NCBI RefSeq assembly: GCF_964188315.1
Contig: NC_135659.1
Span: 101,184,001-101,248,000, forward strand
Direction of reading: 5' to 3'
DNA length: 64,000 nucleotides
Origin: Podarcis muralis
Taxonomy: Eukaryota
Under the pieces are notes generated by a model. The model ran no database searches. It was not told the origin of the DNA and worked only from the letters and a program-made list of their open reading frames with translations. Positions 52,939 to 64,000 of the stretch are shown here, one piece after another. The translations under genes and the position numbers were made by a program. The stretch's first letter is position 1, and each line of letters starts with the position of its first letter.

Positions 52939-55342
52939 CTAGCGAGAGAACTTGCGCACGGCCCGGTAGCTGCCTGGGGGCGCCAGGCGCTGGGGGGTCT
53001 CCTGGGGCTCCTCTTCCTCCTCCTCTTCCGCCAAGTCGTTGGCTGAGCCCCATCTGCGCTGCGCTGGGTGGATGGTCCTGGGCAGGAGGAGGCAAGCCAG
53101 CTTCCGGTTCCTGCTCCGCTCCCCCCGGATCGGGCTCAGCTCTGGGGAGACACCAGCAGACCCCCCAGGGGGGCACGCTCACACAGATGGCAGAGTTGGA
53201 AGGGACCACCAAGGGTCATCTAGTCCAGTGTTTCCCAACCACTGTTCCGCGGCACACTAGTGTGCCGCGAGATGTTGCCTGGTGTGCCGCGGGAAAAATT
53301 AAAAAATTGAAAGATTTTTTTTTTTAAAGTCAAATTTTCGATTGGGGCGCCGTCACTAGATGACCCCTGGGGTTCCCTCCCTCCCTCCCGCTCTGCGCCT
53401 CCCTCCTCCTCCTCCTCCTCCGGGGAGGCCCTTCCTGGCTCTCGGCCAAGGCTTGGCGGCTGCCACTCACTCACTCGCTCGCCCACCCGTCCCTCCATTC
53501 CTGCACCCGGCCTCTCCCCCTCCGTCCCCGGCGCGGGGGCTGCCGGGATCCGTAGTCCCCTCGCCCTTGGGCTCCGCGCCCGCGCGGGGTGCGCAAACTA
53601 CGTTTCCCAGCGTGGCCTGGCGGGCCGGGCGTTTTGTTTGAAGTGCTCTTCTCCCGGCCATGGAATGAGCGCGGCGGCGGCGGCCGGGCGGGCAGGGGCT
53701 CTTCCGCGCAGACCCCGCGCAGCCTGCCTGCGCCCCCGCGGAGATCGGGCGGCAGGATGGAGGCCGGGGATCCCCACGGAGGCGGAGCGGCGGAGGCTGC
53801 CCCCCAGGTAGGGCTGCGTCGGGGTTTTTTTATTTTTGCAATGCTGCATCCACGCCGGAGGGGACGCATCGGACTGCGGGGAGACCCCTTGGCGGGCGTG
53901 CAAGGCAATGCATGCGTGCAGGCGTTGCATGGAGTGCAGTGCAATGCAATGGCAACGCGGCGCCCTGCATGCATGGATGCAACTTCCACCGGCGCTCCGG
54001 ACTTGGCAGGTGAGGGGGGTCCCCAGTGGGCGGCAGAGAGAGCCGGGAGGGCAAAGGGGAGCCGGGGAGGAGCAGCGCTGCTCCCCGAGCCGAGCCCGGG
54101 GGGAAACTTCGGCGTCGTTGCGCCGGGTGTTGGAAGCGGAGGCTGGCGGGGGCCCCTCACCTGCAAAACCTGGTCGCCTCTCATATATTTCGTGCATTGC
54201 ATTCATCGCCCGCTTTCTCCTCCAAGGAGCTCCCGGGGGCGCGCGTGGTTCTCCCCGTGTTATCCTCGCAACAACAGCCCTGCGAGGTGGGTCAGGCGAG
54301 TGGCACAAGGGAGCACCCAGGGATTGTCCTGGCCAGGTGGGGTGATTTGAACCCTGCTCTCTGCCCGGTCTTCGTCCTCATTTAGCCCTCACATGTGCAT
54401 GACTGTGCATGACTGAGGTTTTCCCCCCTCGTCTTGGCTATGGTGTGAGTCTGTGCTGTTAATTAATGGGGTTCTGCCTTCAGAGAAGATGAGCCAGGCA
54501 TCAAGGAGGTGATTATGTAATTTGCTAGCAATTCATGTCCCTCCCGGTGTGACGCTGCGCGCTGACGTCACGGGGCTGTAATGGTGGTGTGCCTCGAGAT
54601 TTTTTTCATGAAACAAGTGTGCCTTTGCCCAAAAAAGGTTGGGAAACACTGATCTAGTCCAACCCCACGTCCCTCCCCTCTCCCCAGAGGCCCTTCCGCC
54701 AGACAACCTAGAAGCTCTGGGAAGGGGGCTGCAAGCAAATCCCCTTTAGGGTCCCTTCCCCTCTTCCACATGCAAACAGGGAGCAGAAAGGGACCCCTCC
54801 CCACATATCTATGGGACCGCCTCTCCTGGTCTGCCCCACGGAGGACCTTAAGGTCCATGAATAACCATAGTTGAGAGGTCCCGGGCCCTAAGGAAGTCAG
54901 ACTATCCTCCACCAGGGGCAGGGCCTTTTCAGTGATGGCTCCGACCTGGTGGAATGCTCTGTCCCAGGAGACCAGGGACCTTCAGAATTTAACCTCCTTC
55001 CGCCGCGCCTGTAAGACAGAGCTATTCCGCCTGGCCTTTAATCTGAATTCAGCCTGATCTTTTCTTCCCCTTCCCTCCCTTTTTATGAAGATTACCTGCT
55101 CTGAGACCCCACAGCTAATTCTCTCCTGGTCTCCTCGCTGGCCCAAGTAGGACCAATTCAGCCAGCTAGCCCTGGGGATAATCTAATGCTTATTTCCCCT
55201 AAATTGATTTTTGAATTTTATTGTTATTCATGTTTTTATACTGTATTTTATGCTGCTTTTATAATTGTTTTAAAGTGTTTTAAATTTGTTGTTAGCTACC
55301 CTGAGCCCGGTTTTCGAACCGGGAAGGGTAGGGTATTAAAAA

Positions 55343-55386
<44 letters not shown>

Positions 55387-56346
55387 GAACATTCGCAGAG
55401 CCTGGCTGTCAGATGCTCCCAACGGGAAGACAACAATCAGGATTCGAACCCAAGAGCCACACTCTCCCCTCCTGTGTTTCCGGCAGCTGTGAAGCAGGAG
55501 CATCGCTGCCTGCTCCACCTCTGTGAATTTGTCCCATCCTCTTTCAAAGCCATCCCTGCTTCCTGTGGCAGGGAGTTCCGCAGTCTAACCCGGCGCTCCA
55601 CGTGAAGGACTTCCTTTGGCCCGTCCTGAACCTGCCCTCCCAGGCCGCCCTCCCTGTGGAGGCGCACGCAAAGGCAAGAAGGGGGGGGGCGCTGTTCTTA
55701 CGGGGTGGGGTGGGGGCTCCCTCCGGGGTCTCCACGCAGAGGTAGTGCTTGGCCAGGCGGCCACTGTAATCCCGCACGTCCTGGTTGGCACCTGTGGGGC
55801 GACAGGGAGCTGAGGTGCCATCGGGGAGGAAGAAGCCGCCCTTAAAGAGGGCCGACCCCTTTGGCAGGGAGGGAGGGAGGGGCGTGGATGATGTGGGGGG
55901 GGGCATGTCTTCCTCACCGTGGGTCCAGATGAGCAACTCCATCAGCCGCCGGTGGCCGTGTAGGGCAGCAATGTGCAGGGGGGTGTAGCCCTGGTTGGGG
56001 GGCAGAAGGAGGAAGAACAGGCCCTGAAGCACCTGACTCTGAAACTACCAGACCCCCCCCCAACCCCCCCAAAACGCGCTTTGCCCAGTGCCCCCTTGCC
56101 CTCTGGCACCAAGATGCCTGCACACAGCATGGAGACCTAATACTTTATGGGGAGTGGGGGGCGCCCCACCCGCCACCCAGACCCTCCCACCCCTGGGGTC
56201 TCCAGCAACCCTCCAGCAGGCTCTGCTCTCGGGGGCCTTGCTCACCCCCAAAGCGATGCCCCCCCAGGTCCAGCACCTCTGAATACTCACCCCCTGTGTG
56301 TGTTGCAGGAGAAAAGGGGCAGGAGGGTGGAGGAGAAGGAAGGATG

Positions 56347-56378
<32 letters not shown>

Positions 56379-59300
56379 TAGATAGATAAATAAATAAATA
56401 GATAAAATAATTAATAAAATAATATTATACCCTGCCCATCTGGCTGGGTTTGTGCAACTGGTTGTGCAACTGTGGTGCCCCCCACCCTGCTCCCACTTGG
56501 GCCCCCATGTTAAGGGGAGCAGCTCCACGCTGAAGCTGCAATTCCAGCCCTGGATGGTGCAGGACGCCCCCCCCCCCCAAAAAAACCACACCTATGGTGT
56601 TGCCCTTGTCTACTCACAGGGTCTACTCACATGCTTCGTGCAGAGGGGTCAGCATGGGAGGAGGAAGAAGGGGACATTTAGGGGAACCCCGAACACCTCC
56701 TCTCTCCCCAGGATTCGGGGGGGGGGCAAGCCCGCCTTGCTGCGCAGCCCCCTTCTCCCAGCCCTGCAAGGGACTCACCGCTCGCATGTTGACGTCGGCC
56801 CCGGCCCCCAGGAGGAGGGTCACCAGCTCCTCCTTGCCGTGCTTTGCTGCCCAGTGGAGGGCTGTCTGGGGGGAGAGCGCAGGGGGGTCACCGGGGGGAG
56901 CCTTCCTCCCCCCACCCAGCAAGAAAGAGGCAGCCCCCCTTCTGCCCACCCACTGAACCTCCCAGGAGCAGGAAAGGACGGAGGCTTGCTTCACACACAT
57001 CAGAAGAGCCTCCGGATCAGGCCCCAGGACCCTCTTCTCACAGGAGCCAACCAGAGTGTGGGGGGTCAGGTGGGATTGCTATGAGGAATTATGAAAAATG
57101 CAGCAAGCCATGGTGTCCGCGATGAAAGCATTGCTTGACTGGGCTTGAGTCACTGGCAATAATTTCTGATCAAATCCCACAAGCCTCTGCATCTCTGCCC
57201 CATTTTCTCCACCTGACAGGCATGTATAAGCATTCTGAAACACAGACCAGTTGCTTCACCATTCATCCTGGGCCAGAAAGATAGGAGGTAGATGTTGTTA
57301 ATCTTTAGGTAGATCTTAAGGGCCAGGAAGAGAGTTCACAAGGAGATGGTAAACACTATCTTTCCTTGCCTGTCCTTCCTTTCCTATTTACTGCCTGTTT
57401 ATGACCTCTGGGGTTTGCTAAATGCATTCCTCCTTGATTCCTGTTTTATGCATGCTCAAAGTAGTTATTTGCAGGATTTCTCTGATCTGACTTTGTCCCA
57501 TGTGGTAATTTTTTGAAATGCTCACAGGAAATCTGATTGGTTCGTACAAGTGCTGTGTAAGAGTTCTTTTAAGAGTTAATAAAACGGTTTGGACGAAGGA
57601 GTGGCTATTGGCCCTTCCTCCCAGAGTCTTGCTGGCCAAGCCTGGTGTGTATTTTATTAATCAGGGTCCAATCCTTCCTTTGCCTTCGGAACGCAACACA
57701 GGGGCCCGTCAGGGGAACCCCACAAGCAGTGCTCTCTCCTGCAGAGCCCTCCTCACTAGGAGCCCTTGAAAGCCCTCCGGTCCTCCCTGCCTTGCAGGCC
57801 TTTTCAGGGGCCTGGACTGACTCCAACTGCAAAAGCTGGGCTGGGCTGGGCTTGGGGTTTTTCTGCTGGCGGACAGTTGCTGCTTTGTATCTTTATTTTA
57901 GATATTACGATTTATGTGAAGATTGTTTAACTTGGTTGTGCACTTTTTGATATTTTATTTTTTGTTCATGACTACTTCTGCCATGTTTGTATTTCCGTCC
58001 CCCATCCCCCCCCCCTTGTAAGCCGTCTTGAGCACAGTTCTAACTATGGAAAGGTGGCATGCAAATAAAATGTGCCATATCGGTGAGCGGCTTACACTTA
58101 ATCCAGTGGGAGGGAGTTCCATAGTTTAACTCCACAATGTGAGATGAAGGATTCTGGGGAGGAGAAGGGGGCATTTAGGGGTAAGGGGAGGAAATCAGTA
58201 GTTGGGACCAAATACTTACAAACTGTGTCAGGTCAGGCAGCAGCAGCAGCAGCAGCAACCGTGGGAGAGAAGAAGAGTCATTAAAATCCCCACCCAGGAG
58301 AGACTCCAGTTCCCAGGGAGAACCTCCCCCCCCCCAAAAAAAAAGACGGTGGGAGGCTGTGGGGTGGGGGGGGGTCACAAGCAGAGAGCACCCCAAACCG
58401 AAAGAGGGGCAGTGTGCCAGGCAGGTGGGTGGCATTGGCGCTGGGTCTCAGAGACAGTGCCCATCAGGAAGGCAGACAGCCTGAGGCAGAAGGGACCCCC
58501 CCCCCAGAGCTACGCCAAGGCGACCTGACCCACGTGGGTCTAGACTTACCCCCTGAGCAGAGCGGGAGGAGAAGGGACAGGCGGCAGATTTGGCAATGGG
58601 GGAGGGAAACAGAGAGAAGGGAGCGTTAGAGCCACGCGGTGCATCCTGAAGCCCTCTGAACATGTGCAGAGTGTCACACCCACAGCCGGCACTCACGCAC
58701 CCGGGGCTGCAGTAGGGATCCCCCCCGATGGCTGGGAGGGTGGGGGGCAGAAACATTACAAGGGGATTTGGGCCCCCCTTCCACAAAGGACCCCAAGAGG
58801 AGGAAGATGTGGAGGCCCAACATGACCCTGCCGGGAGTCACAGGCTTAGAATTAAAGCACAAAGCGCCCCCCCCCTGTCTGCAATGGAGACCCCATTCCA
58901 GGGGGGAGCACCTGCCTGAACGGGGCCCCGTCTGCCAGGCTCACCCCCCCCCCCAGGCCTCAGCCCCCTTCCTGACCAGGTGAGACATGGTGGCTGGGGG
59001 GCAGCTGACCCAATTCTGCACTCTCCAGGTGAGGGAGGGCTGGCTGGCGGATCCAGGACCGCCGGCAATGTCTGGGCAACACAATGACCATGTACATATG
59101 CAATAAACGATCTTTTATAGAATTCCTTCAAACCATAACATTGCTGACGTTCTCGTTGCAACACAGGGGCTGGTTTGATCCAGGACCGCGGCTGCTTCTT
59201 TCCAAAGCTCCTTTTGTGTGGGCTCAGCCCCCCGAGAAGTCTTGGGCTCCCAAAGAAGAACATGAGAAGAGGCTGCAGGATCAGACCAGTGGCCCACCTG

Positions 59301-61498
59301 GTCCAGCATCCTCTTCTCACAGGGCAATCTACCCGGAAGAGAATTGTATTTGGAGGAGATAGCGCTCTAAGGTGGTTCCCTTCCTGCCTCTGTTTGCTTC
59401 CCCTCTCTATCTCTTGTTCAGCTCTTGGATGGCTGAAGAACAGCCTTTTAGTGCCCTAATCTGTAAGAAGGGAAGGAAGTGATATTGCTGGGTAGCTGCT
59501 TCTGATGTTAGACATTGTTTAAAGAAAGTAAGGCACTGAGAGAGGTGGCTAATGAATAATCTGTACATAGCTGGTAGCATGTAAGCAGTCAGGCAAGCCA
59601 CACAGGTTAACAGGTTAAAGGTAAAGGTACCCCTGCCCGTACGGGCCAGTCTTGACAGACTCTAGGGTTGTGCGCCCATCTCACTTAAGAGGCCGGGGGC
59701 CAGCGCTGTCCGGAGACACTTCTGGGTCACGTGGCCAGCGTGACAAAGCTGCATCTGGCGAGCCAGCGCAGCACACGGAAACGCCGTTTACCATCCCGCT
59801 GGTAAGCGGTCCCTATTTATCTACTTGCACCCGGGGGTGCTTTCGAACTGCTAGGTTGGCAGGCGCTGGGACCGAACGACGGGAGCGCACCCCGCCGCGG
59901 GGATTCGAACCGCCGACCTTTTGATCGGCAAGCCCTAGGCGCTGGGGCTTTTACCCACAGCGCCACCCACGTCCCATGCTAACAGGTTAGCTATCTATAA
60001 ATCGGAAGGTTTGGGTGGAGTTATTAGAAGCTCCTGCACGGACTGATTGATCGCAGGGCCCTGCAAACTGAGGCTCCCTGGGGGAGTCCCTTCGCCGCTT
60101 CTTGAGGGCTTCCCTGTGGCAGATCCAAGTGCTTGCTTGGTAATGTATGCAATGCTTGCTGTTTAGAAGAAAATCTTTAATCTTCTCACTCACTTGTGTT
60201 TGTCTGAATCTCATTGTAAAAGAACCGCCTGGCATTGGGCAAGACAGCCAGCCAGGCGCCCCTTGTGGGTCTGAGCCCCAGAGTACAAGATCAAGGACAG
60301 CGTTCACACTCACCGAGGTGAAATCCTGGAAGCAGCAGCCGGAGCGTCACGGGAGGGAGAGAAAAGAGGGGCTCAAGTCAGCACCCGGAGGGTGGCAAGC
60401 GCAAGGGAGCCCCTTCAGATGCAGGGAGATCCTAGAGGCAGACTGGGGTTTTTCCAATTTCAGCAGTGCCCTGTGCAGAACCCATTGACCCCGACCCCTG
60501 TCTCTTCCCTTCTGCTCAATTCATTACAGCAGAGTTGCAACGCCCTGCAGTGCCCCCCAGACTCAGCACCCAGAGCAGGGACGCTGGCGGAGGAAGAGGT
60601 GTGCGGGGGGAGCGCACCGCCCCCGGCAGCACGATCCCGGCGGTGTGCCATTGTTGCTGCTTCCCTGCCCACGCTGGGTGCCATGCCCCTATGGGGGGAA
60701 CCACACCCCCAAGACGCATGCCACACCCTTATGGGCGGTGTGCCATGCCCCCAGGACACACGCCATGCCCCCAGGATGCGCACCGGCCCCGCCCCGCCTG
60801 CTCTCTGCCCCCTGGTGCCAGAGCATGAAACTCTGCCACTGCGCAGGGGAACCGGTTGCGCTGCCCTAAATCCGCCTCTGGCACCCCCACCCCCCCCCCA
60901 ATCTAGCAGCAGGCCCTCCTTGGCAGAGGGAGGGGATGCTGGATGCCCAGGGCAGTTCTGCCCCTTCCTTGCAGGCCTCTGGACTCTCCCAGGCAGCGAG
61001 AACCAGCCGGCCTCAAGTCTTGCTCTCTTGCTGGGCTCTCCTGCCCTTGGAACCAGCCGGGGCTGGCCAAGTCGGGCACTGGCTCCGAGGGGCCCAGCCG
61101 CCGGGCGATCTTACCTTCTTGGAGGCGAGGGTGGGGTCCTGCTGGAGTAGGTGGCTGAGGGTGGCCACGTGGCCCCCGGCCGCTGCCTGCAGCCACTCCT
61201 TCTCCAGGGGCTCCAGCTGCAAGGAGAAAGACCCTCTCTCAGTCTCCCCACTGAGGCTCATTTCTTACGTTTTCTGTATGTTTTGACTGTGTTGCCTTTA
61301 TGGATTTGTGTTGTGAGTCGTTGTCTTAATCCAATAGTCCCCCTTCTTGCAGGATCTCCACCAGCCCCACACAGAGTCCCCTGTCTTCTCCCCAGAAGTA
61401 CCTGACCCCTTTCTGGCCCCATCACTCACCGCCACTGGGCTGGAGACCCCCGGGCCACTTCCACCCCCGTCGTCTGCGGCGTCTCGGTCCGACTGGGG
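52939..61498 (-). CDS. SOWAH: Intron-rich Sowah (sosondowah/ANKRD43 family) ankyrin-repeat protein; at least 11 coding exons; 5' part unresolved
   Basis: Exons 61498-61430, 61216-61115, 60325-60314, 58552-58550, 58222-58220, 56865-56779, 56633-56631, 56293-56291, 55990-55918, 55791-55702, 53141-52939. Spliced product: ..PVA|LEPLEKEWLQAAAGGHVATLSHLLQQDPTLASKK|DFTS|G|F|TALHWAAKHGKEELVTLLLGAGADVNMRA|H|G|GYTPLHIAALHGHRRLMELLIWTHG|ANQDVRDYSGRLAKHYL..|..RWGSANDLAEEEEEEE..RKFSR*. Matches the Sowah signature LEPLE.EW...DF.SGFTALHWAAK.G...N.RSHGGYTPLH.AALHGH...VRDYSG. The last exon is less certain. Confidence 0.9.
53226..54651. mobile_element. 1.43-kb non-autonomous hAT element with a CpG-rich interior in the last Sowah intron
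   Basis: Perfect 15-bp TIRs CAGTGTTTCCCAACC / GGTTGGGAAACACTG and perfect 8-bp TSD ATCTAGTC (53218-25 and 54652-59), splitting a minus-strand CR1 tail. Confidence 0.88.
54905..55385 (+). mobile_element. L2-like LINE 3' end with (TTA)n tail
   Basis: RAFSVMAPTWWNAL-like decayed frame; tail similar to the copy at about 4360-4640. Confidence 0.65.
59618..59979 (+). mobile_element. Full-length Sauria/POM SINE in a Sowah intron
   Basis: Head AAGGTAAAGGTACCCCTGCCCGTACGGG; 10-bp TSD TAACAGGTTA (59608-17 and 59980-89). Confidence 0.9.
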
Positions 61499-62807: not shown

Positions 62808-64000
62808 TGGATGCTTTAGTTGAGATGCCTGCATTTCAGGGGGTTGGACTAGATGACCCTTGGGGTCCCTTCCAACTCTACCATTCTATAGTTTGGGGCC
62901 TTTGGCAACATGCAACCTCTGATTTAGTGTCTTGGCAGAGCAAGCGGCCATCCTCACCCCACAGTTCTGAGGCAAGCCCACCGCAACTCCTTCTCCAGCT
63001 ACCCAATTTCGGTTCCGGAGCACTAGCAGCCCCAGAGGCCCCAGGAAACCTACCGGTGCCCCATCATCGCAGACAGTGACCAGGATCTGAGGGGCTGACA
63101 TGTCTCGCCAGCACGGAGACTCTCAGGAGTACCACAGCGACTGGACGGCTGGACAGATGTCCCGCTGGGGGCTGGTCTTCTGTGCCCCCTCCCACTTTGG
63201 AGCAGTCGCCACAGGAAGACGCTTCTCCTGCAAAACAAAACAGCTTTTCTAGCAAGACCCTCTTAGCTGTCCCCGGGCACAAATTTCCTATGCAGTTAAG
63301 ACCCCCGGCTCTCTTCCCTGTATTGACATTTATTTCAATACTTCATTTGTGGATTATGGGGATTTCTACCTAATCAGGGTGTTATACAAAGCAAAACAAA
63401 CAAACAAACAAACAAATTGTGCCAGAATGTGGCATCTGGGAACTCAAGGTCCTTAGACCGCTGATGCAGGTGTTCATCTGTTTTTAGTCTATGGCTGCTT
63501 TAACTTTCTAAAAGTTTCAAATTATTGTTTTTTGTTTTTTCCCCTAATTGATAATTTTATCATTTTCTTGTGAACTGCTTTGAGCTTTTCTTTTCCAACT
63601 GAGCATTGTACAGACAAGCTAAATAAAAAATAGAAAGAAGGCTGAGAGGGTTCACAAGTGCACGTGTGAATTAGGCGCCATGGATTAAGCACCATGGATG
63701 GGATAATCAGAAGGGGGGGGGGGGAGAGAGAAGGAAGTCGCCTCCTTCAGTGCAGCATCCTGTTTTTGTCAGCAGCGGATGAGGAGGAGGGCAGGGGCCA
63801 CCACAGCTCAGTTGCAAAGCATCCATCTCTGCTTGCAGGAGGCCTGGGACTCAACCCCCAATGGCAGCATGTCCAGGGAGGGGGGGGGAGACCCCTGCCT
63901 CCCACCCCCCACTGCCAGTCATTAGACAAAGGACTGACTTTCTACAAGGCAGCGTTTTACGTTCTCATTGCTTCGCCCCTTTACTCAGAATAATGAGGAC

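Follow-up and report, generated by a model that had tools for sequence, protein, structure and literature searches.

The subject of this analysis is a small Sowah-type ankyrin gene on the minus strand of a 64,000-nucleotide (nt) stretch of the lizard genome of Podarcis muralis (contig NC_135659.1, positions 101,184,001 to 101,248,000; hereafter the window, numbered from its first letter and free of N letters), which runs from an ATG at 63101 to a stop at 52939. It contains five microexons of 12, 3, 3, 3 and 3 nt, called here DFTS, Gly1, Phe, His and Gly2 after the residues they encode, and all of them keep the reading frame. These five are genuine coding exons, because they are unique candidates with GTRAGT donors, recur in eight further species and have had their letters read at RNA joints. 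Their inclusion is probably settled exon by exon, driven mainly by core splicing signals and cis variants, a reading that we hold with moderate confidence. The first-pass annotation, made from the letters alone, had proposed these exons, noticed a UGC motif upstream of each and predicted from it a single neural switch operated by SRRM3 and SRRM4. The exons themselves were borne out. The UGC motifs did not hold up as a sign of a five-exon switch, their rate being close to that of ordinary exons, and Gly1 and Gly2 are not coordinated between RNA runs.

The full Sowah mRNA comprises up to 12 exons, all four 3-nt exons counted. When spliced with Phe and Gly2, the model gives an open protein of 233 amino acids (aa), which differs from P. 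muralis RefSeq-type isoform P0286 only by V56M, R144H and R218H, and the first two of these are exactly the differences fixed in the reads of RNA runs X23 and X24. The 3448-nt intron between DFTS and the ordinary exon beginning TALHW offers exactly one AG-GGN-GT and one AG-TTY-GT, and the 788-nt intron between TALHW and the exon beginning GYTPLH exactly one AG-CAY-GT and one AG-GGN-GT. In both introns the two 3-nt sites stand in the correct order, and all four have a GTRAGT donor. Counted over both strands of the whole window (128 kb), there are 11 AG-NNN-GTRAGT sites, these four included. The joint chance expectation for four 3-nt sites with the right codons and order is about 6e-11.

Inclusion was followed in four lizard runs, two of raw RNA reads (X23 and X24) and two of contigs (X9 and X1). 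At the joint between exon 3 and TALHW, X9 and X1 read GAT TTC ACC TCG GGG TTT, that is, DFTS-Gly1-Phe. The form GAT TTC ACC TCG TTC (DFTS-Phe) is found at this joint in X23 (five of seven reads), X24 (eight of eight) and X1, and Gly1 is absent here from the reads of X23 and X24. One X1 contig, in which position 58550 still has its upstream intron attached and is joined via TTT to 56865, fixes Gly1 to its genomic place. At the joint between VNMRA and GYTPLH, an extra GGG appears in all 14 reads of X23, all 30 of X24 and one X1 contig, and an X9 contig joins the two ordinary exons directly, without Gly2. None of the four runs showed the His exon. The resulting pattern in X23 and X24 is DFTS, Phe and Gly2 in with Gly1 and His out; in X9, a contig whose haplotype differs from theirs, DFTS, Gly1 and Phe are in and His and Gly2 are out. 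Part of the microexon structure is already in databases, as the P. muralis RefSeq isoforms include Phe and have Gly2 either in or out. The in-frame isoforms with shortened hairpins that had been postulated do exist, since mRNAs lacking one or two hairpin residues occur both in lizard RNA and among the RefSeq isoforms.

The codon of the Phe exon also varies, being TTT in X9 and X1 and TTC in X23, X24 and X1. In X1, the TTC form without Gly1 and the TTT form with Gly1 stand at equal depth, one at 6.66 and the other at 6.6. A separate genomic source of TTC was not found, the intron holding no AG-TTC-GT or near match. It is likelier that TTC in X23 and X24 represents an allele of the Phe exon at 58220-58222, because Lacerta has TTC at the same exon. 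If allelic, TTC at 58220 would be a synonymous polymorphism within a 3-nt exon that seems to be coupled to the skipping of Gly1.

Annotated orthologues were retrieved by a word search with an open reading frame (ORF) of the window, and eight orthologous loci (Lacerta agilis, Phrynocephalus, Chelydra, Mauremys, Lepisosteus, Acipenser, Synaphobranchus and Megalops) were set beside Podarcis. The resulting nine-species table covers lizards, turtles and ray-finned fishes, with genomic loci of birds and amphibians outside it; the species share ancestry, and p-values across them are descriptive. All eight loci carry the 12-nt exon and the 3-nt Gly, Phe, His and Gly exons in the same order, with the exception of Gly2 in the sturgeon Acipenser, which was not found in that locus. 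Codon changes at the 3-nt exons are synonymous (TTT/TTC, CAT/CAC and GGG/GGT/GGC/GGA). GTRAGT donors follow 43 of the 44 microexons, including all five in Podarcis (GTGAGT or GTAAGT). Among Logan transcript-derived fish proteins listed as cluster representatives, 13 of 13 read DFTS-GF-TALHW and HG-GYTPLH, and the same reading is found in four more fish and four duck or goose cluster members. All four 3-nt exons are included in bird and fish transcript assemblies, and the His exon is used in transcripts of birds, fishes and turtles. At the level of sequence, the loci show that lizards and turtles share the position, order and reading of the microexons with ray-finned fishes. Two annotated models, Caretta P0164 and Phrynocephalus P0162, omit the 3-nt exons, as would be expected if these were chance matches and the real protein lacked the corresponding residues. 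Such an explanation is practically negligible in view of the letters read at RNA joints, the conservation in nine species, the chance estimate given above and the transcript-derived proteins; the first three rule out that chance AG-NNN-GT matches were force-fitted into the model.

The premise that SRRM3 and SRRM4 act through UGC near the 3' splice site agrees with the literature. The typical enhancer of SRRM3/4-dependent microexons is UCUCUC[N1-50]UGC between branch point and AG, and UGC is present in 74-79% of them, although it is not strictly required (bioRxiv 10.1101/2024.09.17.613571). The UGC positions given for the five Podarcis microexons are also exact. When re-read on the minus strand, TGC starts lie at -12 and -9 before DFTS, at -7 before Gly1, at -17 with a run to -35 before Phe, at -9 and -21 before His, and at -14 and -28 before Gly2. 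The caveat of the first-pass annotation that UGC is short and common proved well founded, as 42-55% of the pyrimidine-rich AGs in the window have UGC in -22..-5. The chance of finding it before five of five exons is about 0.01-0.03, or up to 0.05 with a wider window, values in which the free choice of that window is not yet allowed for. Ordinary exons of Podarcis Sowah have UGC in four of five cases, at -5, -5, -16 and -14. Over the nine species, UGC lies in -20..-5 before 23 of 44 microexons, with 19.5 expected from the local background, and before 17 of 36 ordinary exons (Fisher p 0.82). Given this background, the ordinary exons of Podarcis and the nine-species counts, UGC was not found to set the microexons apart from the gene's ordinary exons or from background, and it carries no weight of its own for SRRM3/4. 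The Podarcis triplets are what GC- and pyrimidine-rich sequence yields anyway, and for the neural-switch claim the motif count by itself says nothing.

Conservation of the UGC positions is uneven. Within -20..-5, UGC is found before DFTS in 5/9 species (sauropsids only), before Gly1 in 4/9, before Phe in 6/9, before His in 7/9 and before Gly2 in 1/8. UGC is conserved near His, and near DFTS among sauropsids; it precedes Gly2 in Podarcis alone, is missing before DFTS in the fishes (0/4) and shifts in position before Phe. Before Gly1, Phrynocephalus, eel and tarpon lack any UGC within 30 nt, and the nearest in gar and sturgeon, at -23 or -21, lies outside the -20..-5 interval. A conserved Rbfox GCAUG at the His exon was also considered; it is probably a by-product of AG-CAT-GT in 7/9 species, and the turtles, with CAC, are without GCAUG.

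The distinguishing mark of the microexons is the combination of consensus donors and long AG-free zones, which is common to SRRM3/4 targets and not specific to them. Taken as a proxy for the distance from branch point to AG, the AG-free zone has a median of 75.5 nt at microexons against 34 nt at 36 ordinary exons of the same genes (Mann-Whitney p 9e-11). In Podarcis, CURAY sites lie at -53 before DFTS and at -74 before Gly1, each followed by a UCUC tract; the DFTS site is a branch-point-like CUGAC, with the tract at -43..-35. It is likely that the microexons would be recognized mainly via U1 on a strong donor together with a distant branch point, and the downstream intron may be spliced out first. 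In the X1 contig mentioned above, Gly1, Phe and TALHW are already joined and the intron upstream of Gly1 is still kept, a single observation that matches the downstream-first removal reported for most SRRM4-dependent and very short microexons (PMC10250204). A (GATA)n microsatellite at 56340-56400 lies 50-110 nt upstream of Gly2 in transcript sense, in the zone where the branch point of this exon must lie, and the yUnAy matches of that zone fall only inside the repeat.

On the exon-by-exon reading, lizard RNA always has DFTS and Phe, Gly2 is truly alternative, Gly1 appears to follow one haplotype and His is unused. Gly2 qualifies as truly alternative because it varies within one genotype in the RefSeq isoforms; it is the clearest true alternative exon of the five and has the least conserved UGC. 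The rival view that SRRM3/4 turn on all five exons together through the upstream UGC, with full hairpins in neurons and endocrine cells and shortened ones elsewhere, draws on several observations: in Podarcis every one of the five acceptors has a UGC no more than 17 nt away, the exons have strong donors and long AG-free zones, and a bipartite UCUC...UGC stands at DFTS, Gly1 and Phe; to this comes the high share of UGC among SRRM3/4-dependent microexons (bioRxiv 10.1101/2024.09.17.613571). Nevertheless, the RNA does not behave in this way. X23 and X24 have DFTS, Phe and Gly2 at about 100% and Gly1 and His at about 0%, and X9 reverses the picture, with Gly1 in and Gly2 out. Between samples the five microexons were not found to rise or fall together or in a nested order, Gly1 and Gly2 swapping between X23/X24 and X9, so neither a single on/off factor nor a graded factor with a fixed order of sensitivity fits these patterns. 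In addition, ordinary exons have UGC as often, and exons persist where UGC is missing upstream, Gly2 in 7/8 species and DFTS in 4/4 fishes. We therefore regard one switch for all five as very improbable. A narrower role, in which SRRM3/4 are needed only by the weakly included exons (Gly1, His and perhaps Gly2) and DFTS and Phe are constitutive, is still rather unlikely but has more to recommend it. It is Gly1 and His that X23/X24 and the lizard RefSeq models skip, most sauropsids keep UGC at -7 to -16 before both, and forms with full inclusion occur in birds, turtles and fishes. Against it, Gly1 is included in fishes, even though the eel and tarpon loci lack a UGC within 30 nt of it, and in X1 the inclusion of Gly1 follows the allele of the Phe codon, as a cis-genetic cause would lead one to expect.

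Such a cause could also account for the differences between runs altogether, the haplotype with Phe=TTC, V56M and R144H skipping Gly1 and the window haplotype with Phe=TTT including it. The fixed single-nucleotide polymorphisms (SNPs) of X23/X24 are those of the older RefSeq protein haplotype, and those reads have TTC without Gly1; X9 matches the window exactly and has GGG-TTT; X1 holds both forms at the depths given above; and Lacerta, with TTC, is likewise annotated without Gly1. However, TTC at 58220 is known from RNA and not from DNA, and the argument draws on the between-joint rows among those listed; Gly2 varies within one genotype in the RefSeq isoforms; and the runs may differ in tissue. 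A purely genetic explanation of the run differences is accordingly plausible but clearly less likely than not. The exon-by-exon reading remains preferred, and within it SRRM3/4 may help some exons, with Gly1 and His as the best candidates. Several considerations weigh against this preference. At DFTS, Gly1 and Phe of Podarcis, the branch point, UCUC tract, UGC and AG follow one another as in the textbook, and UGC is conserved near His and, in sauropsids, near DFTS. The four lizard samples could all be neural or all non-neural, contigs lose minor isoforms, so that absence from X9 is weak evidence, and the coupling of Gly1 to a haplotype comes from the single run X1 together with an assumed TTC allele of 58220-58222. 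The species comparisons are phylogenetically non-independent. Finally, most alternative vertebrate microexons of 3-15 nt are neural and SRRM4-dependent, and this prior favours some role of SRRM3/4.

A broader synthesis, which we offer as speculative and rather doubtful, is that the two tandem pairs of 3-nt exons, kept for more than 400 million years at both hairpin tips, are spliced combinatorially to tune hairpin length one residue at a time. Control would then lie partly with SRRM3/4 (Gly1 and His) and partly with cis variants, namely the TTT/TTC-tagged haplotype for Gly1 and UGC in Podarcis versus UGG in Lacerta before Gly2. If this is true, the locus would constitute a natural mutagenesis series for the recognition of 3-nt exons by the spliceosome. 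In the literature search no paper pairing Sowah with microexons was found, zebrafish sowah gene names led to unrelated papers only, and 'sowah' is not named in the supplements examined of a zebrafish srrm4-mutant preprint.

Placement on the Pfam Ank profile suggests what the microexons contribute to the protein. The TALHW exon begins at profile position 3-4, which would put Phe at position 3 and Gly1 at the conserved Gly, position 2 of repeat 1; the GYTPLH exon begins at position 2, so that Gly2 and His would lengthen the loop before repeat 2. DFTS, Gly1 and Phe are thus predicted to build the start of ankyrin repeat 1, and His and Gly2 to extend the loop ahead of repeat 2. Skipping would take out one or two residues at the hairpin tips with the frame preserved.

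Several known systems are comparable. SRRM3/4 (eMIC) microexons, such as the 6-nt TAF1 exon 34' (PMC6948980; bioRxiv 10.1101/2024.09.17.613571), are likewise in frame, 3-27 nt long, and change a surface loop of an interaction domain; they also share strong donors, a long branch-point distance and, at some exons, UCUC and UGC near the acceptor. The Sowah exons differ from them in that their UGC is not enriched over ordinary exons and is only partly conserved, and in that inclusion is uncoordinated within a sample. The conserved, alternative 3-nt microexon of cytohesin-1 and cytohesin-2 also inserts one Gly into a structured domain, there the PH domain, and lengthens a loop by one residue (PMC6314551). 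That of cytohesin-1 has a functional effect and is included at 76% (percent spliced in) in HeLa cells (PMC6314551), and this inclusion in non-neural cells implies that exons of 3 nt are not necessarily neural. Where the cytohesins have a single exon of this kind, Sowah has four, in two tandem pairs, plus a 12-nt exon. Conserved plant microexons are 1-15 nt long, some of them adjacent, with GTRAGT donors and an ancient origin, and are similarly missed or patched by gene predictors; they belong to another kingdom with other splicing factors, and in some lineages have been lost by reverse-transcriptase-mediated intron loss (PMC8831610).

Exons of 3 nt are an extreme case of exon recognition because U1 and U2 are unable to occupy them simultaneously. 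The Sowah gene offers four of them in two adjacent pairs, verified by RNA and conservation and variable in inclusion. It also offers natural enhancer contrasts, including the presence or absence of UGC before the same exon in relatives, a CTG microsatellite with a variable number of UGC, and possibly haplotype-specific skipping of Gly1. With these contrasts, the role of UGC and of SRRM3/4 is directly testable.

The family assignment is clear from the word search with the window ORF, which gave 344 matches at E<=1e-10, nearly all of the 120 listed being named SOWAHA-D or SOWAH-like. A HMMER search with a 162-aa ORF gave no Sowah match and was dominated by giant multi-ankyrin proteins. The window protein has two Pfam Ank repeats after an LxPxEKEW...DFxS motif and ends in a WGSAxDL...RKFSR tail. 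The gene is the ancestral, intron-rich, Irx-linked type of Sowah, and in the turtle, sturgeon and tarpon loci (L004, L006 and L007) a Homeobox_KN gene lies just downstream. It resembles the ancestral Irx-linked Sowah in being intron-rich and in having orthologues that adjoin an Iroquois gene; as summarised in PMC5803294, Maeso et al. (2012) state that tetrapods lost the parental Sowah at the Irx locus, whereas the lizard gene described here is intact and expressed, and turtles and birds have it annotated. Fish orthologues (340-385 aa) carry WHD_SOWAH (PF25877), and lizard, turtle and bird proteins (about 229-287 aa) begin shortly before the ankyrin part, without this domain. The intronless mammalian SOWAH retrogenes reportedly hold the DFxSGF and HGG residues in one exon, which would parallel the loss of plant microexons through intron loss.

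Current annotations of Sowah in fishes, reptiles and birds need correction, as the microexons break gene prediction. In eel, sturgeon and tarpon (L005, L006 and L007), the predicted Sowah falls into two models, a WHD_SOWAH model upstream and an ankyrin model downstream, and the break lies exactly at the microexons. RefSeq-type models contain every partial combination of the microexons, together with patches such as 'VS', in which gtgagt has been translated, and 'Q', a translated cag. One P. muralis protein, P0182 (304 aa, named IRX-3-like isoform X1), runs from Sowah exon 1 to VNMRA, with DFTS and Phe, and continues into the homeodomain of an Iroquois protein. This model reflects either read-through transcription from Sowah into Irx or a chimeric prediction. 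Table 1 lists the exons of the window gene and the UGC motifs upstream of its microexons.

Table 1. Exons of the Podarcis muralis Sowah gene and UGC motifs upstream of its microexons (window positions).
Feature	Position	Strand	Evidence and remarks
Coding exon 1, MSAPQILVTVCDDGAP, ATG at 63101	63054..63101	-	spliced model
Coding exon 2, PQSDRD...SPVA	61430..61498	-	joint 61216/61430 in 31 and 21 reads and in contigs; UGC at -5
Coding exon 3, LEPLEKEW...ASKK, ordinary control exon	61115..61216	-	RNA joints; UGC at -5; AG-free zone 17 nt
12-nt microexon DFTS, cag/GATTTCACCTCG/gtgagt	60314..60325	-	letters between exon 3 and TALHW joints in 4/4 runs; 9/9 species
3-nt microexon Gly1, cag/GGG/gtaagt	58550..58552	-	sole AG-GGN-GT in 3448-nt intron; RNA in X9, X1; 9/9 species
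3-nt microexon Phe, cag/TTT/gtaagt	58220..58222	-	sole AG-TTY-GT in intron; RNA in every run; 9/9 species
Ordinary exon TALHWAAKHG...DVNMRA, body of ankyrin repeat 1	56779..56865	-	Pfam Ank 9e-10; RNA joints; UGC at -16
3-nt microexon His, aag/CAT/gtgagt	56631..56633	-	sole AG-CAY-GT in 788-nt intron; CAT or CAC in 9/9 species
3-nt microexon Gly2, cag/GGG/gtgagt	56291..56293	-	sole AG-GGN-GT in intron; RNA in X23, X24, X1; 8/9 species
Ordinary exon GYTPLHIAALHG...WTH(G), ankyrin repeat 2	55918..55990	-	Pfam Ank; RNA joints; UGC at -14
Ordinary exon (G)ANQDVRDYSGRLAKHYL...	55702..55791	-	126-nt intron joint in reads and contigs; no UGC within 30 nt
Last coding exon, ...WGSANDL...YRAVRKFSR, stop	52939..53153	-	peptide walk of P0152 on window
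UGCUGC at -12 and -9 before DFTS	60332..60337	-	UGC at about -9/-8 in 5 sauropsids; none in 4 fishes
UGC at -7 before Gly1	58557..58559	-	same position in Lacerta; -10 in turtles
(CTG)7 microsatellite, UGC at -17 to -35 before Phe	58237..58257	-	Lacerta has (CCTGA)n there, nearest UGC at -30
UGC at -9 before His; second at -21 (56652-56654)	56640..56642	-	UGC in -20..-5 in 7/9 species
UGC at -14 before Gly2; second at -28 (56319-56321)	56305..56307	-	Podarcis only in -20..-5; Lacerta has UGG there

Two further features lie within the introns of the gene. A tRNA-like short interspersed element (SINE) occupies 59616-59975, where the RNA read runs reach a depth of 360-400x and the contig runs a word depth of 47,000-70,000; at both of its ends, reads continue by the hundreds into dissimilar sequence. 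It is a very abundant, transcribed repeat family. At 57100-57700, RNA reads whose first mate is on '-' reach a depth of 2-8 and carry fixed SNPs of their own (57424 and 57688). They indicate a plus-strand transcript inside the large Sowah intron.

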